From positions 1 through 35,788 of the forward strand of contig RBZT01000739.1 in assembly GCA_003693705.1 (NCBI GenBank): DNA of 35,788 nucleotides, written 5' to 3'. Numbering within the stretch: the stretch's first letter is position 1; the number at the start of each line of letters is the position of its first letter. Position numbers and translations under genes: made by a program. Positions 10,644 to 34,180 of this stretch are shown here, piece by piece. The stretch comes from Polymyxa betae A26-41 (Eukaryota; Protista; Endomyxa: Phytomyxea). The notes below the pieces were generated by a model. It searched no databases, was not told where the DNA came from, and was given only the letters and a program-made list of their open reading frames with translations.

Positions 10644-10652
10644 ATGACTCAT
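10644..10652. promoter_or_regulatory. AP-1/GCN4-type bZIP site ATGACTCAT upstream of His-rich gene A
   Basis: Perfect 9-bp consensus ~88 nt upstream of the minus-strand ATG at 10557. The same core recurs upstream of the other two His-rich genes. Confidence 0.55.
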
Positions 10653-10914
10653 ACATCTGCTGCCTCCAGGTTTTTTGCATATCTTTATGCATATCAAGAG
10701 CATTCTTACGTATTGAAACTGATTATTCATATCTAGTATAGCCTACAGTTATTTTATATTTAAGAAATCGTGGTTGGTAGGCGAGTTTCTGGTTAAACTG
10801 GAGCTATGGTTGGATGGGACCAATTTGTCGTCATGACAAATCGGCCAGATATTGGTAGGATCTTCCACAATTCCGAGCCGAAATTCCAGCGTTCCGGCCA
10901 ATGTTTAATAACCG

Positions 10915-11851
10915 ATGTGGTCGGGTGGTGCTCTTATCTTGGCTCTGCTCTTAATCTGCATTCCCGGTTCTGAATCGCAATGTAGCGCTCCAACTAATCA
11001 TTTCGACTGCCAACTGACCCGATGATTCTTTAGTTTCGCCTTACGGGTTCGGGCCTGGGTTTGGAGGAGCATACAACCCGTATTTTTCATGGGCGAACGC
11101 ATTCACACCATACACCCCATATGGCCCTGAAGCGCCAATATCACCAACAATGCCATTTGGGGCACCAGCGACAACATTTGGTGCACCAACATTTGGTGCA
11201 CCGCCTGCAGCATTTGAGTCACAACCAGTTGCTCCAACTGGCCCGAGTGCACCAATGGCTCCGACTTCTGCTCCAACAACCCAATTCGCTAGCGCGCTTG
11301 GCGCCACACAAGGCGGACCTCCCAACACTCAACAACCGACGATCGTCCCTGTGCCTCAGATTTCGGCGGCGCCGACTACCACTCTCCAGATACTGCCTGT
11401 GCCAGTTCCGATGGCGACACAAGCTCCGGTGACATTGCTAGCCAGCGCTTTAGGAGCTACCCAAGCGCCTGTCCAAATCGCTCTCCCTGCCACAACAACT
11501 CCAGTGACTCTGTTAGCAGGGGCCTTATCAGCGACTCAGGGCGCTGGTAATGTGGCTGCGCCTCTAGTCTCTCAGGTATCTTCATTTTTAAATTGTCTTG
11601 CCTTTGCTCAATCGAAGTCTCAGCCTGTAGCCGCGGCGCCGGTGGCACAGGCTCCAGCGACTGTCGTAATGCCAACGTCAGCCCCAGTCTATTACGCTGC
11701 TGCTGCAGCGGCGAATCCAGCTGGCGGGGAAACGGGCCCTGCTCAGGTCCCAATTACTTCCTATTCACCAACGTCGTCGATGCAGCCTATTCCTCTTGCC
11801 TTGATTATCACAGCTAGATCACCAACAGTACAGGTTTTAAGGGCGGCCTAG
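10915..11851 (+). CDS. Secreted Pro/Ala/Thr-rich (mucin/wall-like) protein with Tyr/Gly/Pro/Phe-rich N-terminus
   Basis: Signal MWSGGALILALLLICIPGSES, an intron at ~10982-11033, then SPYGFGPGFGGAYNPYF..., FGAP repeats and three (L)ASALGATQ-like repeats. Probable in-frame intron 11576-11623; 3' end uncertain. Confidence 0.75.
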
Positions 11852-12329
11852 ATGTACAAACCCCAACGCCCTTAGTCCATTTGCTGATAAATTATGATGA
11901 ATAACATCATTTAGCATATCTTGATGACTGCATATCCGATACAACCAATCTTTTGGATCTAAACACAATGCTGAGTTTATAACGGATTTGGATTTTCAAA
12001 CCAGAAGATTATGTCATCCTGCTTAGAACTAATGACTTTCTTTTAGCTTGTTCGAACATCGTCTCCACCAAACCAGAACAGCGCTTAAGTAAGGTATTAG
12101 GTGTAGTTCATGATCTGACTAACACGCGCCATGATCGCTATCGTCGCGAGCAGACCCAGAAAGCATTAAAGCTGTCGGAAAGAGCGCTGCTGATGGATTA
12201 TGTATAAATGTATTGTATGGTCATGGAACCCAAGGGAATCCATAAAGTTATTGGCAAGGCTATGCGCCTGGCATAATCCAGACCGATTCTCCATCCGATT
12301 CTGAGACCCAAAAACCTTTCGAGGTAGCC

Positions 12330-12960
12330 CAATGGCTTCGGCTATGGAAGTTCAGCGTTTTTTTTCTAGCGCTAGATTGGTTAACGATCTTGCCTATAGC
12401 CATCTATCGTTGTGTACACTGAACAACAGTACCATGTTACGAGGGTTCTTCATCTTCGCTGCAATTGCAAGTCAACTACGTATTCAAGACATCAACGTAA
12501 ATGAAGATAGGAATCAAACCCTTCTGCCTCGTCATATAAGTTGGTTGCAGGAAATGGGGGCACTGAATTCAAAACTATCAATAACGTAGAACGTGCTCAG
12601 CTGAATGGGATTTTTCTCAAAAGGGACTTTTTTGCAAGTGCATGTCATTGGGGCATTTTTGCCTGTAGACCGATTGCATGCATATGCTCTAGTTACATCT
12701 GGCCCACGGCCAACTGTGATTAATCTGAAAAAGCAGGCCAAATGGTTCACCATTGCTGCTGATGTCTAACGCTTCTTATTAGTAGAACAGATGTCCTGTC
12801 GTCTAGCTACCGCTCTAGTTCTGCATCGTCTTCCAATGCTAATCATTTATCATCTTCCAGTCTAAGATCGTCGTCCTCTTTCAGTCTCCAATCCACGTTA
12901 GTATCTCCCAGCAATGCCCCCCGATACAGTTCTGCTACAGGCAATTCAATCATCCAATTC
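12330..12960 (+). pseudogene. Decayed fragment of an S8 subtilase C-terminal beta domain plus Ser-rich tail
   Basis: LVNDL..NNST, GNGGTEFKTINNVERAQL and, after a 1-nt frameshift, [25 protein letters not shown] match the C-termini of both downstream subtilases. A Ser-rich stretch follows. No catalytic domain was found upstream. Confidence 0.72.
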
Positions 12961-13112
12961 TGGATGAGCACTTATCATCCTCTGTGTTCTGTTAGTTTAG
13001 TAAAAATTATGCAGGTTGTCAAGGATCGTTCATGGTGCGTTTTTACTTTATCATACATTTACCTGCACCAGACCATACCAATCAACTATCAGGTCTAAAG
13101 TTGTACAGAACC

Positions 13113-13261
13113 TAAGGGCGCGTTTGGACGACAAGGAAAACCCGGTTTTTGCCAAAATCCGTTTTTTTGTCGAAAATCCAAGTTAGAGAGGGATTTTTAA
13201 ATCGGATTTTGGCGTCAAAACCGGATTATTCGTAGCATCGGGCCATCGGCCTAAGCCCTAA
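13113..13261. mobile_element. Possible MITE-like (Tourist/PIF-Harbinger-like) hairpin remnant
   Basis: Begins TAA-GGGCGCGTTTGG and ends GCCC-TAA. Nested internal inverted repeats: CCGGTTTT/AAAACCGG, GCCAAAATCCG/CGGATTTTGGC and AAAATCC/GGATTTT. Confidence 0.4.
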
Positions 13262-13583
13262 AGGTGATTTATATAGGCTACATTCAGTAACGATAAAATC
13301 AAGAAAATTTGATATCAGCGCAGCCATCCCAATCTGATCAGTATGAGCATAGAAAAGAAACGCAATGATTGCGTTCCAATCAAATGGGACCTTCGTAATG
13401 GCAAGATTCGTCAAGCATTTGTTCGTATCGGCAGCATAGACGTTGGCAAGGGAAAAGACGTACAGGCGTTTCCCATTCCTTCGATGGTTATCGCCTGCGG
13501 CCTGCTCTTCCAGCCTCAGATATCCAGCACAAGATGGATCCATGGAGCGAAAATCGATCCTCGACGTACGCTAGGCCACAGTT

Positions 13584-16500
13584 ATGTTGCGACGTTTCCG
13601 TCTCACGATTGTTGTTGTTGGGATAATATGGGCTCATGTGAACAGCCAAACCGCTGAACGACCACAAAAAATTTTGCTTCGGCACCTCACAATTGACCCA
13701 ACCGAATTGGGTCCAGTCGGAGGGGATTTAAACCTTCTTGATGTTGCTATCTTGCAACATTATATCGTTCAGTTCCCCAGTCCAGTCATCAGCAGTACCA
13801 AGGATGCTGTTCGTGATCTTGTTGGGCATAATCTGACGCTGTACATCCCCAATAATGCTTTTGTTGTTTACACTGATATGGAGACAATCGCCAAGGTTCA
13901 GCTAATGGATGGAATTATCTGGGCTGGGTTATGGCAACCGGAATACAAATATACCAGCTCACCTGAAGTGCAAAATGAATTTAACGACCAATTCAATCTA
14001 GCAGTATTCTTGGGTCCTATAAAAGATTTGGAAGGCTTTGTCCAAGACCTTCCTGCAAAAGCTCTTGCAGAACTAGGCTGTACCTTTGAGGCGCAAGTTC
14101 TTAATCGTGAACGATTGGTCCTCACAAAAATTGCTTACAATGGGATCCCAGTTGAGGCAAACTCACAGCTGAACCCGATCTACGAATGGCTGTCACTGCA
14201 ACCTGAAGTCTATCACATATCTCAATACGAACCCATTCAAATGCACAATTATTGGGCGAAATCTATCGTTCAAAACGATGATCCAGCAGGAAGAGCAGAT
14301 TCGGATTTGCTCTTCGCTCAAAACGATAAAGCAAAACGTCGCAAACAAATTGTTTAAACTTTGATTGTCTGGCAAAGGTATTCTTGGAGCGAATCAAGTT
14401 GTAGGTGTATCTGATACAGGGATCGCCAAAGAGAGCTGTTTCTTCAAACTCCCGCAGTTCAATCTAACAGTGACGCCGACCTCAGCTTGGCAGTATAAGC
14501 CAGTCCCGGCCAGTCAGCATCGTAAGATCATCCAATATGTAGCGCCATCGGGGATCGGAGACGGCACCGACTATCATGGCCATGGGACTCATGTGGCAGG
14601 CACAGTGGCTGGCAAGGTAGTCAATGGCCCGAACGGATTCAAGAAATACAATGGCATCGCGCCTGAAGCCAAGATTGCCTTCTTCGGTTGCGTTTCTCAT
14701 TGATCAAGTCCTATAGTCTTTCTGAATGGCAGTCTATAGATATGGAAGATGCTGCCGGTAATATGCGATCTCCTTGGTCTGTAGATCAGAATATGTATCC
14801 ATATGCATACTCATTGGGTGCTCGAGTCCACACGAATAGCTGGACTGCCACAGTCTCCAATAATCAATATACGGTTTGTGTGGACTCGAATTACTCAATG
14901 GTGATTTTACAACTTGATCATAGATTCAATCGCATGATGTGGACACATTCGTTTATAATAATCCCGATATGTTGCTGGTGTTCGCTGCTGGAAACCTAGC
15001 TGATGTAGGTGTATTGCCGCCGGCGACCTCGAAAAACATTATCAGTGTGGGCGCTTCGTTGTCGTCCAAGGCTATGCTATCAACGACATTCTGCTCCGGT
15101 CCTTTCTACTCTTATAGTCAGTGCTATTGGGAAACGCATTCAGGAGACGATAAAACAGAACACCTTGTAAGAAAGATCTATCAAGCTGGAGAATTTTTCC
15201 GATATCGAAAACTAGGCCTCGTTTTCCAGTGTTGGACCGATGTCTGATGGCAGGATTAAGCCGGATCTTGTGGCATCAGGAGAGTATATCGTCAGCGCTA
15301 ACAAATACTGCAATGGAACTGCATCCACTGACCTGAAAGCGTTGCAAGGCACATCTATGGCCTGTCCTGTAGTTGCAGGGCACTTGTGTAAGATTATGTT
15401 GGTCGTCACTTGACTGCTGCTCAATTACCTGCAGTGTTGGTCAGGGAGTATTTGCTGAAAGGTTTCCTTGCTACTGGCTCTGCCAATGCATCTGCTGCTA
15501 TCTATCCATCTGCGGCTTTGTTGAAGGCTATCGCCATTTCAGGGTCGTATTCGCTGAAAACCAGAGAAAAGTACACAAACAAGTATGTACCCATAGCATT
15601 AGGTGAAGCCCCTGATCCATATCAAGGTTTAGTGTAATCCGGACCTGTTGGTCCCATTATACTGAAGATCGATTTCAGGATTCGGAAGACTCAAGCTCAA
15701 TCAGGTCTTGTTTTTCTCTAACTATACTGGTTTCCAACGAACCATTGTTCCTCGGGTACGATATGCTTCACGCTCATTCAGACATGTTGATGCTGTTTTC
15801 ATTAGGGTAAAAACGGAACCGATCCAATAATTAGCCAAAACCAGACTCATGAATACTGTTTCCAAACGACAAATGTCGATCTTTCATATCCTCCCAGGTT
15901 TACGCTTGTCTGGACTGATGTGCCGGCACAACTTATAGCTGCTAGCAGTTTGGTGCAAGATCTTGATCTGCTAGTTTGGGTTAAAAATCAAACATATTAC
16001 GGTAATGTTGCTGGTGTCGCGGCTCTTTTCTCTAAATTACTTAGCCAATGGAGGCAACGGCACGGATTCCATCAACAATGTGGAACGCGTCCAGTTACCG
16101 AAAACCACCGCAAATCGTACTTCCATACGAGTCCAAATAATTGGTGCATTCCTTCCAGTGGACCGATATCAGAAGTATGCATTTGTTGCAAATGGCCCCA
16201 TAATTGAAATCAGCTGTGAATCATCCCAACTGTAAGTGGTCGTGCTCCGTGATCAAACTTGGCTCGTATTGAATTCGCTCCAGCAAGACACATCGTTCTA
16301 GTCCTTTATCATCTCTCAATTCGGTCAGCCGTTCTGCATCAACTGTCAACGCCATCCGTTCATTGTCAAGCTCGAAGAATTCCAGTACCAGCTCATCATC
16401 AAGCGCGAAGCGTTCTGTATCGTCGCTAAACTCCAGTACCATCTCAGCATCAAGCGCCAAGCGTTCTGTATCGTCGCTAAACTCCAGTACCATCTCAGCA

Positions 16501-17488
16501 TCAAGCGCCAAGCGTTCTGTATCGTCGCTAAACTCCAGTACCAGCTCAGCATTGAATTCGAGTTCCCGCGACAATTCTGTTCCGTTCTCCCAAACTGGTA
16601 CCCGTAATGCGTCTCGACCTCTTTTAAGCTTCACCTCTTTATCTTCTGTTCCTGGTTCCCGTTCGGCGGTCATACAATCCAGTTTTGGATCATCTGGCAG
16701 TCGGAGTTCTCGCTCAACCCTCTGAACTACACCTCGTGGATGATCTCACTGACCGTTCATCTCTCAACCTTAGGCATAACCGATTCGTCTCAAACCTCCA
16801 TGATTTCTACTTTTATCAGAGACATATCTGGAGCTTTATATTCGCCATCATCTCGATTCACGATCATCAGCCTGCGCGATCAGACAGCGTCGTCTACAGT
16901 GCTGTCTTTCGTTGTGCTTCCAAACAGCACTGACCCGGACGCCACGTTTCTAGTCGATATGTTCTCTCAGCAGATTCAAACTCCTGGTAGCAAGCTGAGA
17001 TCTGGAGCTTTACTGTCTAAGGCTGATGAGCCTCCTGTCACGGTCCTGATCGAAGGAGTTTCTCTCGTTAACTGCGGCGCCGACTCGTACGTAGTCAGCC
17101 CGAACGTTTGCCCGACCACCTCGGTGACGATATTGTCTTCTGGTTCGAGCATAAAGCTGGACCAAACCTATTTAGTCATCGCAAGTTCCTGTTTTATCAT
17201 TTCGTTGGTCGCCATCGTTTGTGGTTGCCTGTATCGAAGAAGTCCTGAAAGGCCCAAGCGACGTCTCTGGCAACGGGGCCGGCGCACACCCATAATGGTG
17301 TAGATTTCGGGCTGACCAACCAGACGGCACGAACAGTGTATTTCAGCCTGGTCGACGGGCAACATTCAACAACCGGGACTCAGCAAACGTTGAACGGTGA
17401 GCGAGCACCGATGCCAAGTCAACCGCAACGGTTAATCCAAGGAATCAAGAAATCATTTTACGGGATGGAATCCGAGACAACTTGGTGA
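13584..17488 (+). CDS. S8 subtilase, KP-43/TagC-like, with signal peptide, prodomain, C-terminal beta domain, Ser-rich stalk, SEA-like domain and single TM helix
   Basis: Catalytic motifs [21 protein letters not shown] and GTSMACP; also [31 protein letters not shown] and INNVERV. TM segment [22 protein letters not shown] followed by RR. The first donor is atypical, and splicing near 16650-16700 and after 17240 is uncertain. Confidence 0.88.
16381..16551 (+). repeat. 51-nt coding tandem repeat ([17 protein letters not shown]) x3
   Basis: Near-identical units start at 16399, 16450 and 16501 in the Ser-rich stalk of subtilase 1. Confidence 0.95.
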
Positions 17489-17876
17489 TTTACTTTAAAC
17501 TCGAATTGGTTCGACGCTCATGAACCCGTTTGTTCTGAATCAGGTCATTCGCCGATGACGAGATACAACAATAACCAAGTCGACTTGTCTGTCAGCGCTT
17601 ACCGCGTATATTAAAGTTTCATTAGTTCGCCTTCTGATAGCTGCTATAAACTGATCCCATATATTGTTTTAAAACAGACAAACTCTGCCTTGAAGCTTGG
17701 CATTGGGTAAAAATCGTTGCATGCGTTCAAGGCTATGAGAAAGCGTAGTTCATTGGATGCTTTGAGACAAGAAGGAAAGCTTTGCGAATTGGAAGTCGAT
17801 ACTTTGCCGCCTGCATCGGTTGCAAGCCGATCGATGATGTACGCTGATCTTACTTTAGAAACCTTCCATATAGTTG

Positions 17877-20800
17877 ATGTTGGTGATCTTTGTTGCAATA
17901 GTAATCGCAAGCCTGAAATGGCACCAATCAGTTGCAGTAGCAACAGACAGATCTCGATTGCTGATGCTGCGAGATTTCACGATCAACACGACTGAATTGG
18001 ATTCAATAGGAGCCGACTTTGGCCTTCTCGATACCGATCACGTTCAGCAACATTACATAATCCAGTTCGGTAGTCCAATCTCCATTGAAGCCAAAGATAC
18101 GGTTCGCAACCTAATCGGCCATTCTCTAACCTGGTATATTCCATACAACGCATTTGTCGTCTACATTGATCAGCAAACGATTGACAAAATTCAGAAGATC
18201 GATGGTGTAGTATGGACCGGCTTATGGCGAAGGGAATATAAATACAGTCCTCTACCCGAATTTCAAGCTTTACTAGAGCCAGAAGCCGACGAGACGATGG
18301 AGCTGATTGTTCATTTCGCTCCGTCTGTTGATTTTCCAGAAGCAGTCAATGAGCTTGTAAACCGAGCTCAAATCGAGCTTAATTGTACATTCCAGACAAC
18401 GAACTTCAGTCGAAATCGGGCGGTGTTGAGCGCCATCGCCATTAACGGAATCGGGATCGCGACGAATTCCGATCTGAACTTCCTCTGTTCCTGGTTGGCA
18501 CGACGTCCCGAAATCTATCAGCTATCGCCGCGGGAGTCGTTCGAGCTGAACAACTACTGGGCCAAATCCATCGTTCAGAATGATGATCCAGCAGGAAGAA
18601 ACGAGCATGAACTTCTCTTCGCTAAACATGGTAAGCAAACGAATGCAGCACAGACTTTTTGTCTGATTGAAGTAATGAAGGAATAAAGGGACAAGATCAG
18701 GTTGGATTCCATTCGACCAAAAAGGTCATACTCATCTGCGTTAAAGGTGATCGGGATCAGCGACTCCGGCATATCGAAACAGAGTTGTTTCTTCCACGAC
18801 CCCGATCACGACGTGATCGTGACAACGGTCACGCCAGGCCAGGACCAGCCCGACGCCCAGCAGCCCAGCCAGCACCGCAAGATCATCCAGTACATAGCTC
18901 CAGCCAAGACCGGCAATGGTCTTGACGATTCCGGTCATGGGACGCATGTGGCTGGCACGGTCGCCGGCAAGATCCTCACCGACCCGAATGGCTTCGCCAA
19001 ATACAACGGCGTCGCGACCGACGCCCGCATCGCCTTCTTCGGTTGGCATCCGATTCCCTGAATGCCTTTCTAGTCATTGGTGATTGCAGACATCGCGAAA
19101 GGCAGTACGGTCAGTGTTCCGACTCCGCTTGATGAGACCTATTTCCCATACTCGTATGCTATGGGGGCTCGCGTTAACACCAACAGCTGGGGTTCGACAT
19201 CGTCGCTTGGCGCTTACACGGTCGGAATCTCATTGCTGATCGGTTTCGAGTAATGTTTTGAAGGACGCCAGGCTGATTTTTCGGATCCGAATCACCGTCG
19301 TACTGATTCGTATTGTTCTGTCTGTAGACGTCGACGCAGTCGGTGGACGAGTTCGTGTACGACCATCCCGATATGCTGGTCCTGTTTGCAGCTGGGAATC
19401 AAGGCGCGTCGGGCATCACGCCGCCGGCCACGGCCAAGAACGTGATTGCGGTCGGAGCGACGGTTTCGTCGAACGACATGCTGAAAGCGACCTATTGTTC
19501 GGGCGCGTTCAGAAGCAGCAGCAGCTGCTCCTGGGGCATGAATTCGGCCAGCGATTTGCATGACCATCTTGTAAGACTCTCTATAATGCTTCATGCCAAA
19601 TTTCCTGATCAATCTAGGCGTATTTCTCAAGCATTGGACCAACTTCCGATGGTCGCATCAAGCCAGATTTGGTGGCATCTGGACAAGCGCTAGTTAGCGC
19701 CAGCAGGTTGTGTAATGTGTCGGCTGCTACTGACCTTCTTGTCTCTCAAGGCACGTCGATGGCGACTCCAAACGTTGCGGCACATTTATGTAAAGTGGTT
19801 TCTTATTCAGATTTGGCTGGAAGGCTGAATCTATTGCGATTAGTGCTGGTCAGGGAATACTTAACGAGAGGGTTCCTTGCAAATGGAGAACCTGACGCAA
19901 GCGCCGCCATTTACCCTTCCGCCGCCTTGCTAAAGGCCATCGCCATCTCGGGATCGTTTTCGATTCCGTTCAGGGAGAAATCGAGCAATGGCGGCTCTCA
20001 GCCTCAGGCATTGGGCGATTCGCCCGACTTCTATCAAGGTCTTAAATGAAGAGCACGTCATGGCCCACGGTCTCATTCTGTTTAGGGTTCGGAAGATTGA
20101 AGCTGAACCACGTTCTGTATTTCTCTGATTACAGAGGCAGCCAAGCCACCATCATTCCTCGGGTAACGTCCCGATCGTATTCACGTGATTTGCAGGGTCT
20201 CACGACTGCCTTTTGCAGAGCGCCAATGGAACCGATCCCGTGATCCAACAGCACATGGTTCATGAATATTGCATTCGGCTGACTGCAACGAATAGCTCGT
20301 ACCCGCCCCGATTCACCTTGGTCTGGACCGATGTCCCAGCACAGCCAATTGCTGGCATCAGTCTTGTTCAAGATCTCGATCTGGTCGTTTTAGTCGGCAA
20401 TACAACCTACTATGGTAGGAATCAGCATTGCTGACGTCGCCTCTCTGACGGTTGGACATTCTAGCAAATGGTGGTTCAGATGCCGATTCGATCAATACGG
20501 TCGAACGTGTTCAGTTGCCTGCAACGATCGCGAACAATACTATTATAAGGGTGCAAGTAATTGGGGCTTCTCTTCCCGTCGATGATTGGCAAAGTTATGC
20601 CTTAGTTGCATCTGGACCTATCGTAGAAGCTCATTGTCATGGGACCCAACGTTTTACTCGAAGGTAAACGTTCCTTTTGTTTCAGTAGCGGAAATAATTG
20701 TTAATCTTCTCTATCAAGTTATCGATCGAATTTTGTGTCATCGTCTGGTTCTCGGTGTAATTCTGTACTAACTTCTACATCTCCTAGTTCGACCCGAACT

Positions 20801-20929
20801 TCTAACTACCCATCAAAATCTTCCGGAACTCATAATGACCAATTATACAGCTCTGGAGCTTGGCGTCCATCATGCAGCTCAAGGATGATCGTTATACTGA
20901 GCATTGTATGCACAATGTTAATAAACTGA
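17877..20929 (+). CDS. S8 subtilase paralog, KP-43/TagC-like, with short Ser/Thr tail and hydrophobic C-terminus (GPI-like)
   Basis: [49 protein letters not shown] and INTVERV motifs. Intron positions largely match subtilase 1. Ends MIVILSIVCTMLIN*. Confidence 0.9.
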
Positions 20930-21476: not shown

Positions 21477-24400
21477 CTGGCTGCGGCGGCGACAGCCGTC
21501 CCGCTCCAGCCATCGTCGTCGACGGAATCCGACCAGGCGCCATCATTCGGATCCAGCATCTATCTGAGGATCAGCGACCTTATCCAGGACCTCAGTGAAG
21601 CTAATTATGCTTTGGTGTTAGAAGGCGTTGATAATGTAGGACTGCTGTTGTCTCTTTCACAGAGCTCTGTCAGAATGCCAGTTTTCATCACATCACGATG
21701 ACAGATTTGCAACTTCTATTTTCCTATTCGATTCATGATTCTGATTTCGGCTATTAGTTGAGATTAACGTATGGAAAAGACGTTGATTTGTTCCTTCTGA
21801 GGATATATCTCGCCTTGCTGGCAGATTGCAATGGAATCCCAAGGAAGATGCAGCTGCAGGCTGCGAAACTGTTTATCGAGACGAATCGAGACGATGTGAA
21901 CTTTGCTGGTTTGTTTACAACCGCATTCGAGGTGATGGCCTTCTCCCTGGAAAACGTCTTCGTCTAATTTCTCTATTCCAGTCAATCGAAAGCCGAGTCT
22001 GCTCTGATCTATTATCAAGCATTGTTACGAAACTCGACCTTAACGTTGTGACTACGGCGCGCCTGGCGCTGGCGTTGTCGTCGTCCACGACCAATAATGT
22101 CATGAAGCAGGTTCGATATTTGGCATTGCTGCGTATTGCTTTGCTAAGCTCTGTAGGGAATCGAATATCTGAGCACCCATGTGGACGAATTAACCAAAGA
22201 AACCTTCCCCGAACCATTTCTTCACAATCTGTGTTTTTTCTTTCGTTCCACGCTTCTGCTGCCCGAATCCGTTAAAGAGTCATTTTTTAGCAAATTGAGG
22301 TCAGTACGCTACCATTTTGTTCTCAACAATGTTACTCCTACTGGACGCTCTGTTTCATTATCCATTTCGTAACTCTGTTTTAGGCAATCGCATCCGAACA
22401 TCGTGAATTCGTCTGCGTTCATCCCAATATTCAATCCATCCAATCATGATATGACCTCTGTAAGTCCTTTTTTTTTTACATTTCGATACTTGTTTTGACA
22501 AAAAGTTAGGCTCCTCTGTTGGGCTCTTGTGGCGCAACGGTCTCAAAATGCGCATTATCGCAGATGCTTCACGATCAGGGCTACTCTTCGTGCCAATCGA
22601 TTTCACGCTTGAAAGATTTCTTGACGGAATTTTCGCCCATCGACGAAGGCACCGTTGCCGATTGTTTGGCCATGTTCCTGCGAACTGGCGACGGCGAACT
22701 ACCACCGTCTGATGAGACCTTAGCGAGCGCCTTCTCCATGGTCGTTACGCGAGCCTGGAAAGGGCAAGGTCTGTCTCATTGATTGATCGTGTTTGCACTG
22801 TGATACCGATTTGTATGCGTGTAGAGGGTCAAGCTGCCCCATCAGCTCCTGTCGAGGGAAACGTCCTGTCGGACTGGGACTTCGGCCTGTTTTTGACAGC
22901 TGTTAAGGAGGTTGCTCCGCAGCTGGATTTCGGTCGCGTCTTTCGCCTGTTCGATCGCGACGAGTTTCTCATCAAAGTAGTCCTTCTGCTGATTTCGCAG
23001 CCTTTCCCATCATTGACGTTTTTGTCAGGATCAGAAAAGTTTCGAAAAGCTACTGCATATTCATGAGCTCGTCTTTCCAGATTCTGTATTTCCCATTGAA
23101 ATCATTTTTGGTTCGTGGCGGAATCGCGTTGGGCAGCTTTCATTGCTGCGAATGGCGATCGGCTCACCAGGTTTCTGATGCTCGTTTGTTTCGAATCCTC
23201 CTCTAAATTTTTATAGCCATTGATTTCAGCCGCTCTACTCATGTCATGGAACATGTCCCTGGTCTGCCTTCTCTGCCTTCACATCGTCACGGCTATGGGA
23301 TTGGAAATGATGCCTGGAGCTCGCTCGATCTATTGCATACTCTTTTTGATCTGGTTCGTCTATTTGTTCGATCTGAGCTGTATTATGAGGCTGATTTGGG
23401 CAGTCCGATTCGGATCTCTATGGAGCTGTTCGCAATTTGTTCAATGTTCCCATTGAACAGTGTCCCGAATTGCTACTTTGTGCTGCCATTCAAACCAGAC
23501 CTGGATCGACTTTACGCACCGAACTCATCAATATTTTGCTTCCGAAATATTTCCGACAGAACCCGTGCTCTCGTACGTTATTTTCCTCTTATTGTCCATT
23601 CGGTTTCGACTGCTTTTGCCCATATTCGAATATTTTGTCGTCCACCAGTAAAAGGTTTGCACAGATATTGTACTGGGTCACATCTGGCAGCGAGAGCCTT
23701 CCGTTTTGATAGATTTCATGGTACTCATGTACATGGAGGACCGCTCCTTCTTACATCGCATCCTGGATGTCGCGCATGATCTGAAGGATGCTCTCGCTTG
23801 TATTCTGGATGCGAAACCGTTCAACTTCGCCATTGATCTGGCGTGTTTGGCGGCACCGCGCGAGTTTATCAATCTCGACAAGGTAATTTACATTCCGTTT
23901 GGCCGCATTATTGTTTTCAATCATGTTTTAGTGGCTCTCTATGCGCTTAAGTGAATATGGAAACTCGTTCGGGGTTGCTTGTCTGGAATACTTAACCCGG
24001 TCGTTATCTGCTCAGGTAAATTCGTTATTCATCATACATGATTTTCTGATATCGTTCAGCATCCGGTTGCTGCGCCATTCTCTATTGAGATGGCGTCTTC
24101 TTTTATCAACGCTTTGAAAAGCCATATGTCATCTCTAGCTCCGGAGACAGTCGCTCATCTCACAGAGCTTGCGTCAGCGATCCAGCAAGTCGCCGCTATA
24201 TCGGGACAGAAGCCTCCAATATCAACATCTCTGGGACCACCCGCGCTGCCTCATAATCCATCCACAATCAGTGCCAATATCGAAGAAGAAGCGAATTCGT
24301 TTTTCCAGATGATCTACGATGGAAAAATGTCGATTGCAGACGTTATCAATATGCTGGTATGTGGCTATCCCCTTTAAATTATCATTTGTTTTTCATCTGA

Positions 24401-27400
24401 ACCAATACTCATTGGTTTTTGATAGATTCGGTTCAAAAGTCCATCATCGACCAAACGGGAGAAGGATATTTACGTCTGCATGATCCACAACTTGTTCGAC
24501 GAGTACCGCTTTTTCAACAAATATCCCGAAAAGGAACTGCGAATAACGGCGATTCTCTTTGGCACACTAATTCGCCACGATTTAACGACGAGTTTCGACA
24601 CCTCTTTCGCTTTGCGCTATATTTTTGGTACATCGATTCCTTCAAATCGGTTATCCGGTGTATTTATACTGCTTGCAGAGGGACTCCAGAACGCTCCTGG
24701 ATCGAAATTGCATCAATTCGGTTTGTGGGCGCTGGATGAGATTCGGTCTCGTTTGCACGAATGGCCCGATTTCGTCAAAACGCTTGTTGACCTTCCTACG
24801 ATTCAGGATCATGTAGAGCATATTTAATCTTTTTTATCTCATTGTGCTTTTTCAGAAAATTGATTATTTCGGTTTTCCGTGTTCCTGCATACTTATGGTT
24901 TTCGAGCATTCAATATGCGTCTATTTCATGTTAATTTTGGGCTGTGGTTATCCGTCCCTCTTTGTGTTATTCCGCTGATTGAATTCATGCCAAAGGCCGA
25001 TCTGGTTGCGCTGCTGCGCTCAATCGCTGCTCACCCGACACCGGCCGCCAATGCCACGCTGCCGAATGCGCGCGAATCCAGTTCGGCACGACCATCGGAG
25101 CCGTCGCCATCCGGGCCAGCGTCCGTACCCGGCCCGGTCGCAACTGGATCAACGCCTATTGCAGCAACCTCGACACCCTCGGCGACTGCCACTACATCTG
25201 CCAATGCGTCTCTTAAAATCGCCTCGGTTGGCGGTATTGATGCCGTTTTGAAACAGAAGAATTTAGGTTCGCTCAGCAAAGCTTTTGTTTGTTGCGTTGC
25301 TGACATTTTCTCTGCAGTGCTGTTTTCTTCGCTTTCACAAGAACTTGCCGATAAGCTGTCATTCATCGTCAACAATGTCGACATCGTCAATATGAATGCG
25401 AAAGCTGAGGAACTTCGATCGCTATTGACATCCAGCATTTACGGCCCATTCGCTCACTATGTTGTCGTCAAGCGAGTCACCTCCGAGACCAACTTCATCA
25501 AGACGTACGTCAGCCTGGTTGAAACGGTAATACAGCCTGATCTCCTTCAAAATGTTCCGCTTTTTGAAAATGCCTTTCTAGTTGAAGCTTCCTGATTTGA
25601 TTCGTGTGCTTTTGTTGTACACCTACGAGGCCTGCAATGTCCTATTACATTCTCCCACTATCGTCCAATCGTCCCAGGAACGATCGCTGCTCAAGAATCT
25701 GGGGTCCTGGCTCGGCATGCTGACAATCAGACGAAACATACCAGCTCTCGCCAAATACATCAAATTCCCCAAACTCATCATTGACGGGTACAACCAAGGT
25801 TGGTTTCAAACTGGAAACGTTTCACACCTGTTTCAATGATGTAAATTTCTAGGTCGTTTGATCTCTGTGATTCCATTCGTCGCCAAAGTTCTCGAGAGCT
25901 GTTCAGAATCGCGCGTCTTTCGTCCTCCCAACCCGTGGTTGATGTCGCTTGTGTCGCTACTGGCGGAGCTTTATCAACTGGCCGATCTAAAGCTCAACCT
26001 GAAATTCGAAATCGAGGTCCTTTTTCAGAAGATTCAGATCACGTAAGTCGCTTGTCTTTTACAGTTTTGTATCGCTGGCTGATTATCGACGGGCCAGTAT
26101 GTCGGACGTCCCGATTCGCAATTATCTGCCGATCGTGAACCAGGCCCAGAACCTGAACTTCCGTAATCCGTCCGAATTGGCTGCCAGCGAAATTGCCGCC
26201 GGGCTCGCTCCCGCCACTGCCCAATCGCGCCCGGCGGTCACGACGACTTCGCAGCCTGCCGCGCCCTCCGGCCTCGCTCATGAGGCGGGCTCCGCGTCGC
26301 GAACCATTTCAGGTACTCCTGCTGCTTATCATGCTGAAGAGCCGGGTCCTCATGCTCAGGTAAACATTTTCTGCGAATTGTGAACCTTTTCGTCTTTATC
26401 TCACCTTGTTGTGTGAACACTTTCCCGTAAATTTGTGCTTCACAGTTGAGCAAAGATTATTGTTGTGCTTCACATGCAGGAGCGGTTTTGGCGTTGATTT
26501 ATTTGAGGCGGCGTGTTGGGCTGAAACTTGCTCGTAGGGCTATGTAACTATCAATCCGTCCTTGACACTGTTCACGACGAACCCGCGTATGAAGACCTGC
26601 GTGTCGATGGCTGTCGACCGTGCCATTAACGAGATCATCTCTCCTGTCGTCGAACGCAGCGTTCACATTGCATGCATAACCACTCGTGAACTAGTTTGCA
26701 AGGTAAACTTCTGTTTCCGAACCTTACTCTGTGTTAACAATGTTGCAGGATTTTGAAATGGAAGGCGACGAGCTACGAATGCGAAAATCAGCGCACCAAA
26801 TGGTGCAATCGCTAACTTGCTCGTTAGCTCTGGTTACGTGCCGCGAACCTCTTCGCCTCTCAATATCAAATCATTTACGTTCGCTATTGATCGCCAACAA
26901 TGCCGACGCTGCTTTGACAGAACAGGTTTGACATAACATTTTCCATAACATTTCTGCTCGTTGAAATGGTCTCATTCTGGCGTCAGGCTGTTGTTCAGGT
27001 TGCCAATGACAATCTTGATTTCGGCTGTACCATCATTGAGAAGGCGGCATCGGAACGAGCCATGCGCCAGATCGACGAAACGCTCCAAATCGAATATGAT
27101 ATCCGCAGGAAGGCTCGCGAGCATAAACAAATCTATGTCGATGTCGCTTTTGCTCAGGTGCGTCAATGCTCGAATCTTAAATTTTTCGTTTTGTTTTTTA
27201 ACGTAATATTTTGGCGTCGTAATGTTTTCCTCCAGAGCAGCATCAGATTAAATTCTGTTTCAGGGTCGACTAACTCGTTATCCGTCATCTGTGCCCGAGA
27301 CGTTACGCCCGCGACCTGGCCTTATTACCCTCCAGCTCAATGTGTATGACGAGTTCGGTGTCCCGAAATACCCGCCCAGTTCATCTTCGTTGGCGCCGCC

Positions 27401-30261
27401 TTCAGCCACGATTCAGGCCACACTGGATTCACTGTCCACCCTCATCCATCAGTTGCAGAGCGCTGCGACCGCATCTGACAATATCTCTGAAGACCACAAT
27501 GTATTCGATCTTTCAATATTGATGATTGTTCTCTTACTCAGTCTTATTTCAGGCTCGGGCTCTTCTGCTGTCGATCCAACAGATCTTGCAGCAGTCGATT
27601 GAGCATGAAGAAATCGCGCTGCACTTCACCAAATCGGTTTTCGCTTTATATGCCGCACCCAATAACACTCCAGCTCTCATCGAACTTTATCTGAATCTGA
27701 TGAAGGTAAAACGCTTTCTCGGTCTCCTTTTGAGTTGCGCAGTTTGAAACTCTAATCGGAACCGCGAATCAATTAACAATTGCTCGTACAGGTCACCTGC
27801 CACTCGGTTGCCACCGGAGCGAAGCTTGTTACTCTGTGTGTGATCAGTGCCGATGCGCAAACGCCCGGTCCGACTCTGTTTACATTGTCGATTCCATCGA
27901 TGCGCGGCCTGCTTCGTGATGGTCTCGTGATCACTCAGCAGCTCGACTCCCATTATGCCAACCAGTTCTCTTCATCGACAGCGCTCTCTCTGTCCCGTAT
28001 CACATCGCTATGCGCATTGCTGCAGACCTTCATCATCCAGGAACGTATCGTAGCACCTGGCGAATTCCCGCAGACGCTGGAACTGCTGGCCCATCTCTGT
28101 GCCCCTCTGGCTGCTGTTAACCCAGGCCTGCGCGACACCATTCGCGCATTCCTCGATCAGGTTCAATCCAAAGACCATGCGCTGAATTTCAACGTGGACG
28201 ACAAAGTGACCGAGGTCGACAAGGAGGCGTTACCGGCGCCCGAATTGAGCGCCGCCGACGCTCGCGAAACGTACAAAATTCTGTTTAACAAATGGATCTC
28301 GATCTGCGTTTCCCAATCGTCGACGCTGGACGAGGCTTTCCATCAATACCTGACTCTGCTGAAATCTCAGCACATTCTGCAGTCCGAAGCGTCCGTCGAG
28401 GAATTCTGCCGCACTGTCATGGTCGTCGCCATCGAGAAATGCATCGATCAGCTAAAACCGGCCTCGGCCCAGCCAACCCTCAATTATCATCCCATCGATT
28501 CGTTCTGCAAGTTGATCGTCTGCTTGGTGAAGGTAATCAGGCTGCTTTTTTGGCGACATTGGGGTAACCTAAGCGCAGGTTCTTTCAACGACGAACGGTG
28601 GCATGTTCGTGTCGAAGATCAGCCTGCTGACAACTTTCTTCTCCGTCATCGCTGACGTACTGACCCGTGATTTTGAACGCGATCCGGAGCAGTTCGCCCA
28701 GCGGCCTTACTTCCGTCTGATTGTCAATCTCGAACAGGTCTGCTTTTCTTTTTTGTCACTTCTTCCCAACTCAGCCATCAACGATCATCGTTTTCCCTGT
28801 TTTTGTTGTTTGTTTTTGTCTTGACCTTCATTTTTATGTTTTGCTGAAGGACTTGAACGCCAACGATCCCGAGCTGGATCCGATCAGTGTTCCGATTTTG
28901 ATGGCCTTCTCTCGGCTGTTCCATGAGATCCGCCCGGCTCTGGTGCCTGGATTCTGCCTATCCTGGCTTGAGCTGGTCTCGCACCGGACCTTCATGCCTC
29001 GTCTGCTTCAATCCAAGACGCACAATCTCATGCAGATCTTCAAATCACTTTTGGTCGACCTGCTATCGTTTATGCAGGTTCGTTTTAGTGCCATCAGTTA
29101 TAACATCAACTGAATCTTGGCTGCCAGATCTACTTACGTACCCCGTATTTGACCGAAGCAATTCGTTCATTGTACAAAGGTTCATTGCGAATCTTCCTGG
29201 TCCTGTTGCATGATTTCCCCGAGTTCCTCTGCTCCTATCATTTCTCGTTCTGCGATGTGATTCCGCCCTCGTGCGTCCAGCTGCGTAATCTGATTCTTTC
29301 CGCCTTCCCGCGTCACATGCGTCTCCCCGATCCTTTCTTACCGAACTTGAAGGTAAATAATCTTATTGACGTTCTTTGGAAGCATCTTGCTGAATTGCAT
29401 TAGGTTGATGCTTTACCGGAAGTGAAAGAGCCTCCGGTGATCCTATCTGATGTGTGTGCCACTCTGGTCCATTCGGGTCTCTTGACCGAAATCGATCAGT
29501 TCATGGCACTTCATCACCGCCCGGATTCGTTCTTTGCCGATCTACATGCCAAACTACTTCGGCCAAAGCACGAAATCGCCGCCGCCGGTACCATCTACAA
29601 CGTTCAGTTGATTAACTCAATTGTGTTATACGTCGGTCAGAAGGGCATCCACAGCTCGACGGTAAAATCATTTTGATGTTTTAGTTTGCATTGCTATATC
29701 GGGAGTTTTATTTGCTCTCAACAAAATCTGTTGGCCTTTCATTTAACTTGAAATTAGGCGCTCACTGACAATGGCTGTTCCGCAAATACAGCAGCGATGG
29801 AAATTTTCCAAACGTTGACATCACAGCTGGATGAAGAAGGCAGATTTTACTTTTTAAATGCGATCGCCAACCAGCTCCGCTATCCTAACAATCATACACA
29901 TTACTTCAGCTGTGTCTTGTTGTTCCTGTTTGTCGAGGCTAAGAGCGATATCATTCAAGAACAGATCACAAGAGTGCTTTTGGAGCGATTGATTGTGCAT
30001 CGGCCGCATCCCTGGGGTCTTCTAATAACGTTCATCGAGTTGATTAAGAACCCGGTGTATAATTTCTGGAACCATCATTTCACTTACTGCGCTCCAGAGA
30101 TTGAAAGGTTTGTCTTTTTTTTTATATTCGTAGCATTTTTTTTAAACGAGGTTTCCTCCAGGCTGTTTCAGTCGGTGGCACATAGCTGCATGCAATCGGT
30201 TCCTGGAGCGCCTTCACAGCAGGTGCCCTCCCCCGAGGATCCGCTTCTGAACGCAGTATGA
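21477..30261 (+). CDS. CNOT1: CCR4-NOT transcription complex subunit 1 (scaffold), many short introns
   Basis: [119 protein letters not shown] and [14 protein letters not shown] motifs. All traced introns are GT-AG; the start is unresolved. Confidence 0.96.
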
Positions 30262-31105
30262 CGTCAATAATATTATATCCGTCCCTGTACAGAACGAGGA
30301 CAGAATCGGGAAGCGCTCAATGCCTGATGTCCCATATCTAAATCCAACGTGTTGTTTCGTCTTCAATTATCTATGTTAACAATATAGTTCAGCGCCTTTT
30401 TACTATGCTGCCTCTGTTTGTTGTCCAAAATATCCGGATTCCCTAGTACTCCCATTTAAAATAGATTCTGAATTCTGAGCAAATCGAATCCTGAGGCCGA
30501 TACGTTGGCAAATCTTCAGGATTGACCTGGTTTTGCCAATAACAGTTTCTTTTTTGACAATCCTTTATCAAAGGGTTGTGCTCCTTTTACTTTCCGGAAA
30601 AACAGCTAAAATGTGTCAGGCAACGAAAGACTGAATTTTTAAACCTCCAACTAGAAACGAAATCGAGGCGCCAAAAGGTACCGTAAATAAGTGGGCTGCC
30701 AACCCAATCGATATCCACTCTGTCAATGTTCCATATAAAGCAAATCTATACCTCAGCGCAAAGCCCATAAATTCATGTGGCCAAACTCGTACAGTTTCAT
30801 TCTAAATAAACCAAGTTCATGCTGAGTGTTCCATTACTTTTATAGAAAGATAGCTTGTAGATTTGGTCGCTGCAAAAACAGTCTGACGACGACGACAACA
30901 GAGAGTTAATGGAAAGTAGCCGCTGGCATCGTCGGCACCCTGCTGCTACTTTGGGTCCGCAACGATGATATTTAGCATCATGATCCCGACCATGGCCAAA
31001 AAGGCTGTAACGAAGATTTTGTGCGAAATATTCCGTCAAACGATTCCGATGACAACCCTATCCCTGCCTGGATCTTGGATGGAGCTTCTTGGTTGATTCA
31101 CCATA

Positions 31106-31171
31106 TGAGTCATGACTGAACATTTTGAGTCAATCGTTTCAGACACGCTTCGGCTCCCAGCCGATGACTCA
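31106..31171. promoter_or_regulatory. Cluster of three TGA(C/G)TCA (AP-1/GCN4-type) sites upstream of His-rich gene B
   Basis: TGAGTCA at 31106-31112 and 31126-31132, TGACTCA at 31165-31171, a near match TGATTCA at 31094-31100, and TATA-like ATATAA near 31221. Confidence 0.65.
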
Positions 31172-31286
31172 GGCGTCGAGCTCCATCTTGTGTGGATATG
31201 ATGGCCACCTTAATTCATTCATATAATCAGTTAGTTTTCTCGAACGCTCTATTTTAAAGTCGAACGACACTCACCTATCGAAAGCA

Positions 31287-31703
31287 ATGAAGACCACTTC
31301 GATCCTCGCCTCGATTGCCCTGCTGTTGGCCGCCCCTGTCCAAATTCAGGCTGGTGATGCCGCTATCGACGTTCTGAACGGTGATGGTCACGTCGATAAC
31401 GTCGCCGACATCCGCGGTCTTCATGGATTTGACGGTCACCATGGCGATCACGATGGCTTCCATGGACACGGACACGATGAACACGGTCACGGCCACGGCC
31501 ACGGCGACCACGGCGACTTCGACCACGGCCACGGCGACCACGGCGACTTCGACCACGGCCACCGCGACTTCGAACACCTCGGCCATGACTTCGAGGACTG
31601 GCAAGATGACGACCACTTCATGGCTCATGGTCACGACGTTCCCCACGGATACGATGGATTTGAGCACATCCAGCACGAAGACGGCCACCACTGGGATCAC
31701 TAA
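31287..31703 (+). CDS. Secreted His/Asp/Gly-rich protein (138 aa, intronless), family member B
   Basis: Signal peptide MKTTSILASIALLLAAPVQIQA; mature part is dominated by H, D, G and F (HGHGDHGDFD repeats) and ends EDGHHWDH*. Confidence 0.88.
   Translation: MKTTSILASIALLLAAPVQIQAGDAAIDVLNGDGHVDNVADIRGLHGFDGHHGDHDGFHGHGHDEHGHGHGHGDHGDFDHGHGDHGDFDHGHRDFEHLGHDFEDWQDDDHFMAHGHDVPHGYDGFEHIQHEDGHHWDH
31494..31562 (+). repeat. 30-nt coding tandem repeat (HGHGDHGDFD)
   Basis: CACGGCCACGGCGACCACGGCGACTTCGAC occurs twice, followed by a partial copy. Confidence 0.85.
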
Positions 31704-31787
31704 ACGCGTCCACACATTGCCTTTCCTAATAAACGTAAACAGTATTGGCTGCATATCTTGTCTGTCTTTCTCGATATTCGAATCTCA

Positions 31788-32568
31788 TTACAGATCGGCT
31801 TCGCTGAGATACGGCGCCAGCAATGCATACCAGTTCAGAAGGTACCATCGCCCTGAAGAAGTGTCAAAGGCGATCGTTCAGTGAAATGTCCTGTGTCATA
31901 CCTTCCGAATGACGTAATTCCACCATGATCGGTAGATGATCGGTCGGCATTGTTTCGGTTGGCTCGCGCCATTGCGACCTGGACATCAACACGAACAGTG
32001 ACCGTTGCTGCTGCGTGGCCGTCGTCAGATTACGTCGCGACCCGGTGCGCTCCAGGCGATCGGTGACTCGCGGACGCTGCTGGCGCTCGGCTTCAACAAG
32101 CTCGGCGAACAGACTCGAGTCGCCACAGAAGCTGTCCAGGCGAATTTCGATTTTCACGCCCGTAGCGTCTTCTTTGAAATACGAACGAATTCGTTCGGGT
32201 CGGCCCTGAACCCGAAATCGAATTCGTGATTCTTAAATACAACTAGTTTCGATTCATACATAGAGATGGCGAATTAGAAACTCGTGCTCAGCAGGGCGTA
32301 GACGATTGCCCCCATCTGGGCCGGGTTCGAAGAACGACGGGTGCAGACAATGTGGCAGCATGGTAAGGCCGGCGACGGGCGATTCAGCAAGACGTTGCAG
32401 GGCTAGGCAGGCCATGAGGACAGCGCCGTCCGGGGATCGTGACCGTTTCTGGCAAACATGTGGGAATTCGTCAACGTCAGGGACGGCAGGGATCTCGGCC
32501 AGCAATGTCACCTGGGCCGTGTTGCAAGGACGGGCCGGCGACGCCGACCTCTGTAATCGTGGAGGCAT
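31788..32568 (-). CDS. Hypothetical protein (spliced), unknown function
   Basis: Two GT-AG introns of ~54 and ~49 nt join three segments in frame: ...EHEFLIRHLY|GRPERIRSYFKED...IMVELRHSE|GRWYLLNWYALLAPYLSEADL*. The 5' end may extend to ~32875. Confidence 0.6.
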
Positions 32569-33059
32569 TGCTTACGATGTAATGTTACAGAGCAGCCATC
32601 ATCACCTACAAAGAGAAGCTCCAGTATAGGACGCAACCCGATCAATTTCGAACTTTTTTTATTCGAAAAATGAAACTGTTGGAATCTCTTCGATATCGAC
32701 GCAGGTGACATTCTTGGTGATGGTCGTGAAGATTCAGCGCGCCGTTCGATGAGTCAAGCGGGTTTGAAGGCGTCAAAAGCTCCAGCAAACCATTTCCGAT
32801 TTGAAGATGTTATCTAACCACAATACTTACCTGTTTGAGATAACACTCATATAGAGGCGATGATAATGATGTCATCAGTGGCGAGCGCTGATCATGGTGA
32901 CTGCCACCGCCAGCATCACGATCGTTGGGCAAGCTCTACTGCGGTGCTGTGCTCATCTCACAAGCGTTAAGTTCGACTTAACGATACACTGTATTAAACC
33001 CAACGTTCTGGTAAGAGACCTATCGTCAGTTCCCATCTTCATATCGACCTGCTTCACAG

Positions 33060-33515
33060 ATGTCGTCTGTTGTATTGACGTGCTCTCTAATGGCGCTCAT
33101 GCTGGTGGTTGGGCTCTTCGCCTGTCCGGGGCCGAAAGAGGAGTTTTACATGCGGGCGTTGAAAGATCGCCACGTGATCCAAGGCACGGTTGTTTCCAAA
33201 AACATAACCAATATCCAAGCTGCAGGCCAGGGCGTTGTTGAAGTCATTTACACTATTAAAGTCACGGAATCGTACAAAGGCGACCTCGAGCAAGGCAGCG
33301 TTGTCAATGTTACTTCGAACTCAGCAGATCGGACGTGTGGTCGTGATCTGGAGGCGAATACTGGAGAACACTTTCTACTCGGCATCGATGAGTCAGAGTG
33401 GGGATATTCAACCTACCAGAATAACCTGTTCAGGCATTTGAATGAGGTGACAACTGCAGAAGATCTTCTTCTTGCGGAGTACAAAAGACAGAAGGAACAG
33501 GCCCTGTCTAGTTGA
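33060..33515 (+). CDS. Secreted single-domain TIMP/NTR-like protein
   Basis: A 21-aa signal leaves Cys at mature position 1. VIQGTVVS, IYTIKVTESYKG, VNVTS...TCGRDL and EHFLLG follow the N-TIMP OB-fold pattern. Intronless. Confidence 0.78.
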   Translation: MSSVVLTCSLMALMLVVGLFACPGPKEEFYMRALKDRHVIQGTVVSKNITNIQAAGQGVVEVIYTIKVTESYKGDLEQGSVVNVTSNSADRTCGRDLEANTGEHFLLGIDESEWGYSTYQNNLFRHLNEVTTAEDLLLAEYKRQKEQALSS

Positions 33516-34097
33516 TCATTATTATACCTTCACACTGAAGTCGGCATCTTTGTTGTTTCGTTAAAAATTCAGCTGTATCAAAATATCGGTGTTCTGTGCG
33601 TAGTAATGGGGGAGCTCTACTTCTGACTAACTCCCGATCCAGTCGCGAAAGACCTACCAACTGTCGTTGTCGATTGTGAACCTGCTGGGTATCTGAACGA
33701 TATCGATTTTATTAGATGGAAACCAAGCGACAGAATCCCTATAGATAACAGATGCCTAATAGTATTCGCAGAAGTAACTTTAGAGTTTACAGTAAGTCGT
33801 CAGTCCGGCGACTTTAGAAACGGCGGTGGTTTCACCGACCTCGCAGCCTGGAAGGTCTGACGACGCGGCGAAATTGGTAACTCTGAAAGCATACAGCTGA
33901 TCGTCGTTCTGGATACCACCTATTATTATACAGAGAGAAGCTTCAGCAGAGTGAAAAACTCTGTCGACCTTGGAGCGAATTTTTATTTGAAATAAGTGTG
34001 CTACTGGAAGCTCAGCGATCTAGATCAAAGCGGATGAGGTCTGATGTGCGTTTCGATTCCGATAGTTGGTCGTCATGAATCACAGATAAGATCAGCG

Positions 34098-34106
34098 ATG
34101 AGTCAA
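34098..34106. promoter_or_regulatory. AP-1/GCN4-type site ATGAGTCAA upstream of His-rich gene C
   Basis: TGAGTCA at 34099-34105, ~76 nt upstream of ATG 34181, with a near match TGAATCA ~23 nt further upstream. Confidence 0.55.
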
Positions 34107-34180
34107 GCAACCATAGGGCGAACGTCACGAGTTGCAGCCGACCACTTACTATTTCACCCAACCGAATTGAGTCTCTATTT

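Follow-up and report, generated by a model that had tools for sequence, protein, structure and literature searches.

TGA(C/G)TCA clusters as a probable promoter element of a secretome gene battery in Polymyxa betae

A contig of 35,788 nucleotides (nt) from Polymyxa betae A26-41 (RBZT01000739.1, GenBank assembly GCA_003693705.1; contig C598 in the numbering used here), hereafter the window, carries three genes for histidine-rich (His-rich) proteins with signal-peptide-like starts, designated A, B and C. Each has the palindromic heptamer TGA(C/G)TCA, or TGASTCA, upstream of its start codon. An initial annotation proposed that these genes, together with a neighbouring gene for a TIMP-like inhibitor of Zn proteases, form a regulon controlled by a basic leucine zipper (bZIP) factor of the AP-1/GCN4 type. 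Analysis of the 27.1-Mb genome (1001 contigs) suggests that TGA(C/G)TCA, more broadly (A/T)TGANTCA(T/A), is probably a working promoter element that marks a battery of secretome genes and that is most likely read by a bZIP dimer. It is very likely that the motif is a real cis-element. The element is of the known AP-1/GCN4 kind and is not a new type of site. The His-rich proteins are the most striking class of a broad secretome programme, which is not a dedicated His-rich regulon.

Results

Sites in the window

An exact scan of the window identified eight TGASTCA sites, at 10645, 11215, 31106, 31126, 31165, 32750, 33389 and 34099. The seven sites listed in the initial annotation are all present, and those upstream of the His-rich genes lie at the distances it gave: 88 nt upstream of gene A (ATG at 10557, minus strand), 175, 155 and 116 nt upstream of gene B (ATG at 31287) and 76 nt upstream of gene C (ATG at 34181). 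Only two further sites had been recognized by eye; 32750 and 33389 do exist, but the site at 11215, inside a low-complexity open reading frame (ORF) and probably a chance occurrence, had been overlooked. The identity of the heptamer as the AP-1/GCN4 site is borne out by the eight exact matches and by the A/T flanks of cluster sites across the genome.

The placement of sites in the window is far from random, and their total count is not enriched. The roughly 600 nt of DNA upstream of the three His-rich genes make up 1.7% of the window but hold five of the eight sites, and the chance that three 200-nt promoters would each hold a site, at the window's own density, is about 1e-4. The total of eight is ordinary: uniform base composition predicts 4.4 sites, in line with the earlier estimate of about four, the genome-wide density predicts 3.3, and dinucleotide shuffles contain 6.3, with 33 of 100 shuffles reaching eight. 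Two central-base variants (TGAWTCA) stand beside exact sites, TGATTCA at 31094 and TGAATCA at 34076 (12 and 23 nt away, respectively), so that gene B carries four sites and gene C two. The gene B cluster is 116-187 nt upstream of the ATG, with a TATA-like TATAAT in between. The single site of gene A falls within a spacer of about 360 nt common to gene A and a divergent low-complexity gene.

The ordinary total is what would be expected if the pattern were non-regulatory, reflecting chance, base composition or promoters copied along with duplicated genes, and any shared word could have been picked from the window. One window site is indeed common by descent. A segment designated C' is approximately 65-70% identical to 34075-34270 (local score of 45, compared to a maximum of 29 in 500 shuffles) and resembles the promoter and first exon of gene C in decayed form, with GAG at the start codon position and an in-frame TAG. 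Since C' is a duplicate of the gene C promoter, 32750 and 34099 represent one ancestral site, not two independent sites. The context shared by these two sites had been noted initially, but the assignment of 32750 to the TIMP-like gene is unclear; the site belongs to the promoter of a decayed gene C paralogue, and the link to the TIMP-like gene is therefore not independent evidence. The 13-mer CGATGAGTCAAGC that contains site 32750-32756 and recurs at site 34099 is perfectly kept within C/C' DNA that is about 68% identical, and would represent a small footprint.

The extended form CGATGASTCA is found at four of the eight window sites (31165, 32750, 33389 and 34099), two of which (32750 and 34099) have it because of the C/C' duplication. 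The CGA flank was rejected as a general feature, as it occurs at 3.5% of half-sites compared to 1.9% in the background.

Clustering of the motif across the genome

The genome contains 2475 TGASTCA sites, one per 10.9 kb. Pairs of sites within 1-80 nt of each other number 124, compared to 11 for the control, the same pattern read backwards, and about 18 predicted from site density alone. When split by orientation, there are 64, 50 and 21 pairs, versus 6, 2 and 3 in the control. Mixed pairs of an exact site and TGAWTCA are even more numerous (239 versus 12), and in the DNA that was read TGAWTCA shows a 5.2-fold enrichment at distances of up to 60 nt from exact sites. Three repeat families with several sites each account for approximately 28 loci and inflate the raw pair counts. 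Removal of these families leaves about 76 unique cluster loci, and the excess of pairs, more than tenfold over the reversed control, is still about fourfold. Spacing inside clusters is mostly 10-46 nt. Cluster sites avoid ORFs, with 23% located in open segments of at least 100 codons compared to 57% of all positions.

The base preceding the heptamer at 116 cluster sites is A in 42%, T in 34%, G in 19% and C in 5%, and the base following it is T in 41%, A in 32%, C in 16% and G in 11%. The preference for A/T, with avoidance of C at -1 and G at +1, fits GCN4/AP-1 sites. The Maf/CNC element (MARE/ARE, TGCTGASTCAGCA), which needs GC flanks, was rejected as a candidate on this basis. Enrichment of 6-mers around the clusters revealed no second motif, yielding only AT-rich intergenic words. 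The Yap/Pap1-type word TTASTAA shows a 1.8-fold enrichment near sites (n=2) and the cyclic AMP response element TGACGTCA occurs once, numbers that are too small to interpret.

The cluster promoters appear not to be copies of one another, with the motif as the only thing they seem to have in common. All-against-all blastn of 58 cluster regions (±200 nt) detected no similarity other than a single 43-nt match involving a repeat. Among the His-rich targets, relatedness is detectable within only two groups, and low-complexity masking leaves no similarity among the others. Each of four His-rich paralogues (L035a, L035b, L037b and L053c), which share 33-58% identity, has retained two or three sites, at distances of 30-160 nt from its ATG. 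Likewise, L029 and L030, lectin-like paralogues with 34% identity, have each retained two sites, although the remainder of their promoters does not align. The family of four His-rich paralogues has a non-repetitive block (…LTATMNAKDQH.DSYSHLHDNAHET…), and its only relatives are two proteins of approximately 294 amino acids (aa) encoded by environmental transcript-like contigs (P0121 and P0122) of about 930 nt that lack promoters. The presence of relatives in two environmental contigs indicates that this is a real protein family; no locus turned up in a metagenome scan. Between the pair counts, the dissimilarity of the cluster regions, the avoidance of ORFs and the class bias of the flanking genes described below, a non-regulatory origin of the pattern is very improbable, and the genome-wide counts largely refute it.

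One of the repeat families (L032:2501-2590; C32:130215-130304) has three TGASTCA sites and one TGAATCA within about 90 nt. Some 20 further copies exist (on C190, C245, C260, C439, C466, C467, C475, C771, C1000 and other contigs), often less than 2 kb from the end of a contig. This repeat resembles the end or the promoter of a mobile element that would use the same word as the secretome promoters. In a second, smaller family, two sites stand at a constant spacing of 16 nt. In addition, C618:5847-5965 and C755:11337-11455 are near-identical promoter copies upstream of a DHHD-coding stretch, with TGAGTCA and TGACTCA, respectively; the difference in the central base fits a free central position.

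Genes flanking the clusters

The 52 loci that were read contain 55 unique clusters, the window's own included, and about 26 unique clusters lie outside this set. An ORF of at least 60 aa that starts with ATG and has a signal-peptide-like N terminus begins within 300 nt of 25 of the 55 clusters and points away from the cluster, compared to 7.1% of control positions in the same loci. The distance from cluster to start for these ORFs is 30-211 nt (median of about 90). Among non-overlapping ORFs of at least 100 aa, 20 of 39 beside clusters are signal-peptide-like, versus 15 of 144 elsewhere (odds ratio of 9, p = 1.4e-7). The same comparison for a His content of at least 10% gives 6 of 39 beside clusters and 1 of 144 in the background (p = 4e-4).

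Ten clusters adjoin His-rich genes when multi-exon genes are counted (L015, two at L035, two at L037, L044, L051, L053, L054 and gene B). The His-rich link made in the initial annotation is therefore real genome-wide, holding for 10 of 55 clusters, but the programme is much wider than His-rich proteins plus an inhibitor of Zn proteases. Roughly half of the targets are other types of secreted protein, including Kazal, CAP and PAN proteins, three types of lectin and unknowns. Pfam matches among the targets comprise Kazal, PAN, CAP, B-lectin, SUEL lectin, legume-like lectin and the heavy-metal-associated (HMA) domain; a Pfam scan assigned the His-rich proteins to no family. His-rich secreted genes are grouped in the genome, at C920:4000-22000 (L053 and L054) and at C479:12000-14000 and 133000-141000 (L035 and L037). 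At least five are found within 18 kb on C920, and most of the grouped genes have their own motif cluster.

The prominence of His-rich proteins raises the alternative of a narrower, metal-responsive regulon, in which a metal-sensing bZIP would turn on secreted His-rich metal binders together with proteins that handle metals, and the other targets would be incidental. The signal would be zinc, copper or nickel supply, or metal withholding by the host. His-rich proteins are the most distinctive target class, and the only target with a direct metal-handling annotation, an HMA-domain protein with MxCxxC (L016:2818-3444; C202), lies 235 nt downstream of a three-site cluster. The product of L015:2011-2235 (minus strand; C160), downstream of a cluster, is 16% His, and its N terminus, MGACC…, suggests myristoylation/palmitoylation and does not resemble a signal peptide; a His-rich yet apparently N-acylated protein would suggest that His content, not secretion, may be the common thread. 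However, most annotated targets (Kazal, CAP, PAN and the three lectin types) have no evident metal link, and no metal transporter was seen among the targets. Moreover, metal binding by the His-rich proteins is suggested by composition only, with no Pfam domain. A regulon of this narrower kind is possible but unlikely.

Candidate bZIP factors

The genome has six matches to bZIP_1 (PF00170; loci L055-L060), four of which are above the cut-off. L056 has the canonical N-x2-AA-x2-SR basic region (NKEAALRSR). L055:1501-1641 (minus strand) and L058:1501-1626 (plus strand) have a GCN4-like basic region (E-[SA]-A-[RA]-R-S-R) with Glu in place of the invariant DNA-contacting Asn; the Glu at the Asn235 position is seen in alignments to both CREB and GCN4 chains. 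In L060 the Asn is replaced by Lys. Such bZIPs are of an unusual class. L057 is similar to Hac1/XBP1. Among solved structures, the closest are CREB, GCN4, Fos, Jun and NFIL3, all weak matches with best PDB E-values of about 1e-3. No convincing clusters that would indicate autoregulation were found at the bZIP loci.

The substitutions bear on whether the motif, if functional, might be read by a factor other than a bZIP, or might generally set the promoter strength of genes that are highly expressed or secretory, without being the switch of a specific programme. The invariant Asn is absent from two of the four best bZIP matches, and the lineage is remote from model organisms: the assimilatory nitrate reductase encoded in the window, which also carries pieces of NOT1 (Pfam), is at most 42% identical to any database protein, with matches spread over chytrids, brown algae, plants and amoebae. 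Nevertheless, the combination of TGASTCA and A/T flanks is the textbook AP-1/GCN4 site, its palindromy fits a dimer, and its recognition by bZIPs extends to distant protists. In Phytophthora infestans, the bZIP PITG_04908 binds TGACTCA on protein-binding arrays (PMC11267843), indicating that recognition of this word by bZIP proteins reaches far beyond animals and fungi. As for a general element, a site is present within 350 nt of only 8 of about 150 non-cluster ORFs of at least 100 aa, near the level expected by chance, which indicates that the motif is not a general promoter element. A non-bZIP reader or a general strength element is improbable.

The core and flanks also match the Gcn4 site ATGASTCAT, and two of the bZIPs have a GCN4-like basic region, as would be expected of a GCN4-type element for general amino-acid control. 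However, the targets are secreted proteins, and a Pfam scan of 30 cluster-flanking proteins revealed no enzyme of amino-acid biosynthesis. General amino-acid control is extremely improbable as the role of the element.

Other features of the window

The window has a GC content of about 47% and short introns of approximately 47-70 nt. The exon structure of gene A was read by eye. Gene A encodes a protein with a signal-peptide-like start and a His/Asp/Glu-rich body, and gene C encodes a signal peptide followed by very His/Asp-rich exons. The N-terminal GDGH(V/I)D motif of gene B is common to a gene pair on contig C920; the exact gene B protein has no match on record in a database look-up. The TIMP-like ORF matches TIMP (PF00965) with an E-value of 4.5e-4 and 20.5 bits, below the curated cut-off of 23.1. 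The site at 33389-33395 lies inside the TIMP-like coding sequence, as had been stated initially, and probably has no regulatory role. A probable 48-nt intron (GTAAGA…CACAG), seen by eye at 33012-33059, ends right before the TIMP-like ATG. The TIMP-like gene may use the relic promoter at 32725-32950, with a transcript that may start in or near the relic, which would fit this probable intron. Coordinates are collected in Table 1.

Table 1. Coordinates of the motif sites, genes, protein family and repeat copies. Positions without a contig or locus prefix refer to the window.
Feature	Position	Strand	Remarks
TGACTCA site, full ATGACTCAT context	10645..10651		88 nt upstream of gene A ATG
TGAGTCA in low-complexity protein ORF (11150-11851)	11215..11221		exact scan
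Gene B homotypic cluster	31094..31171		TGATTCA 31094, TGAGTCA 31106, TGAGTCA 31126, TGACTCA 31165
Gene C two-site cluster	34076..34105		TGAATCA 34076, TGAGTCA 34099; 76-99 nt upstream of ATG 34181
His-rich gene A	9918..10557	-	several exons, short GT..AG introns; by eye
His-rich gene B	31287..31703	+	intronless, 138 aa, signal peptide, 21% His
His-rich gene C	34181..34892 (end approximate)	+	several exons, introns ~47-70 nt
Relic C', apparent decayed copy of gene C promoter and exon 1	32725..32950	+	local alignment
TIMP-like secreted ORF	33060..33515	+	151 aa; Cys predicted directly after signal peptide
Conserved secreted His-rich family	L035:2631-3332; L035:3699-4532; L037:5190-5801; L053:7676-8254
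Second repeat family copies	C86:68424; C177:1087, 1422; C259:15083; C686:53716; C942:15096
Third repeat family copies	C87:5219; C136:7818

Discussion

The proposed mechanism is that a dimeric bZIP of the AP-1/GCN4 kind would bind the element, which would be used in homotypic clusters, each with 2-4 copies at intervals of 10-45 nt. Such clusters would act approximately 30-270 nt upstream of the start codons of at least about 75 genes, or of a few hundred when central-base variants are included. The battery would be dominated by proteins of the secretory pathway, with several apparently unrelated His/Asp-rich families as its most distinctive members, and would also include Kazal inhibitors, CAP, PAN and lectin proteins and one HMA-domain protein. 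Genes A, B and C are candidate members, and 32750 would mark the promoter of a fourth, decayed member. The battery genes would presumably be expressed together, and a signal would presumably act on them; the settings proposed in the initial annotation, encystment, spore wall formation and host metal competition, are candidates.

Several observations weigh against a secretome battery. Single sites are no commoner genome-wide than composition predicts, and one-site promoters such as that of gene A therefore rest on context. No secreted target is obvious for about half of the clusters, and the PPR, FYVE or methyltransferase genes that adjoin some of them may be there by chance. On C920, a divergent His-rich pair that is related to gene B lacks an exact site; its 254-nt spacer holds only the variant ATGAATCAT (TGAATCA), and another His-rich gene in the vicinity has a single exact site roughly 200 nt upstream, accompanied by three one-mismatch sites. 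Genome-wide enrichment of the motif in promoters of His-rich genes, suggested initially as a check, is strong from the side of the clusters but only about 2.3-fold from the side of a DHHD-coding word. This word has 176 matches genome-wide, versus 47 for a control, and a site lies within 500 nt on its 5' side at 14 loci, compared to an expectation of about 6; on the 3' side, 8-9 loci have a site. Most of these words are lone matches in ordinary DNA, which dilutes the comparison from the His-rich side and makes it weak support. Finally, the background ORFs were drawn from DNA neighbouring the clusters and not from random loci, gene calls were ORF-based, and signal peptides were recognized by a simple hydrophobicity rule.

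The element is most like the AP-1/TPA-response element read by Jun/Fos, an identical palindromic heptamer with a degenerate central base that is present in several copies in proximal promoters. Animal AP-1 drives metalloproteinase and TIMP genes, and the battery proposed here likewise includes secreted proteins and protease inhibitors. Unlike the AP-1 system, P. betae has approximately six bZIPs, none of which is a Jun/Fos orthologue, the target set is dominated by His-rich proteins, and binding by a bZIP is predicted. The yeast Gcn4 element ATGA(C/G)TCAT has the same core and A/T flanks, and two of the bZIPs are near the EAARRSRARK of Gcn4. In contrast to Gcn4, L055 and L058 have Glu where Gcn4 has the DNA-contacting Asn235, and amino-acid biosynthesis targets are absent among the 30 proteins scanned.

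PITG_04908 provides a precedent for a bZIP that reads TGACTCA outside animals and fungi. Oomycetes are also known to have bZIP classes with a substituted Asn (PMC4046829). The substituting residues are Cys, Val, Tyr or Arg in oomycetes and Glu or Lys here, and the bZIP family here is small and not expanded, unlike that of oomycetes. A further likeness is to the gland boxes of nematodes, effector-promoter motifs that are read by SUGR-1 (PMC11929438). In both cases, a short promoter word common to otherwise unrelated secreted-protein genes defines a secretome battery; the word and the factor family are different. A literature search on the motif found nothing relevant.

A more specific version of the secretome battery may be considered, in which clusters of TGANTCA, read by a GCN4-like bZIP with Glu in place of Asn, would switch on several unrelated families of secreted His-rich, metal-binding proteins together with protease inhibitors and lectins, at a single life stage or upon a change in metal supply, as a 'metallo-secretome' under one switch. 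The unrelated genes would have been recruited by independent gain of the heptamer. This proposal is speculative and rather unlikely in its full form.

If the element functions as proposed, one short word would predict membership of the battery, and would provide a list of candidate surface, wall or host-interaction proteins directly from the genome. The motif narrows the search for the regulator to approximately six bZIP genes, and makes the function of the odd His-rich families testable through the condition that switches on the battery. The battery would be a further case of unrelated genes that have a common promoter word but separate promoter ancestry, and the element may offer a first handle on gene regulation and the secretome in a lineage without a close sequenced relative.

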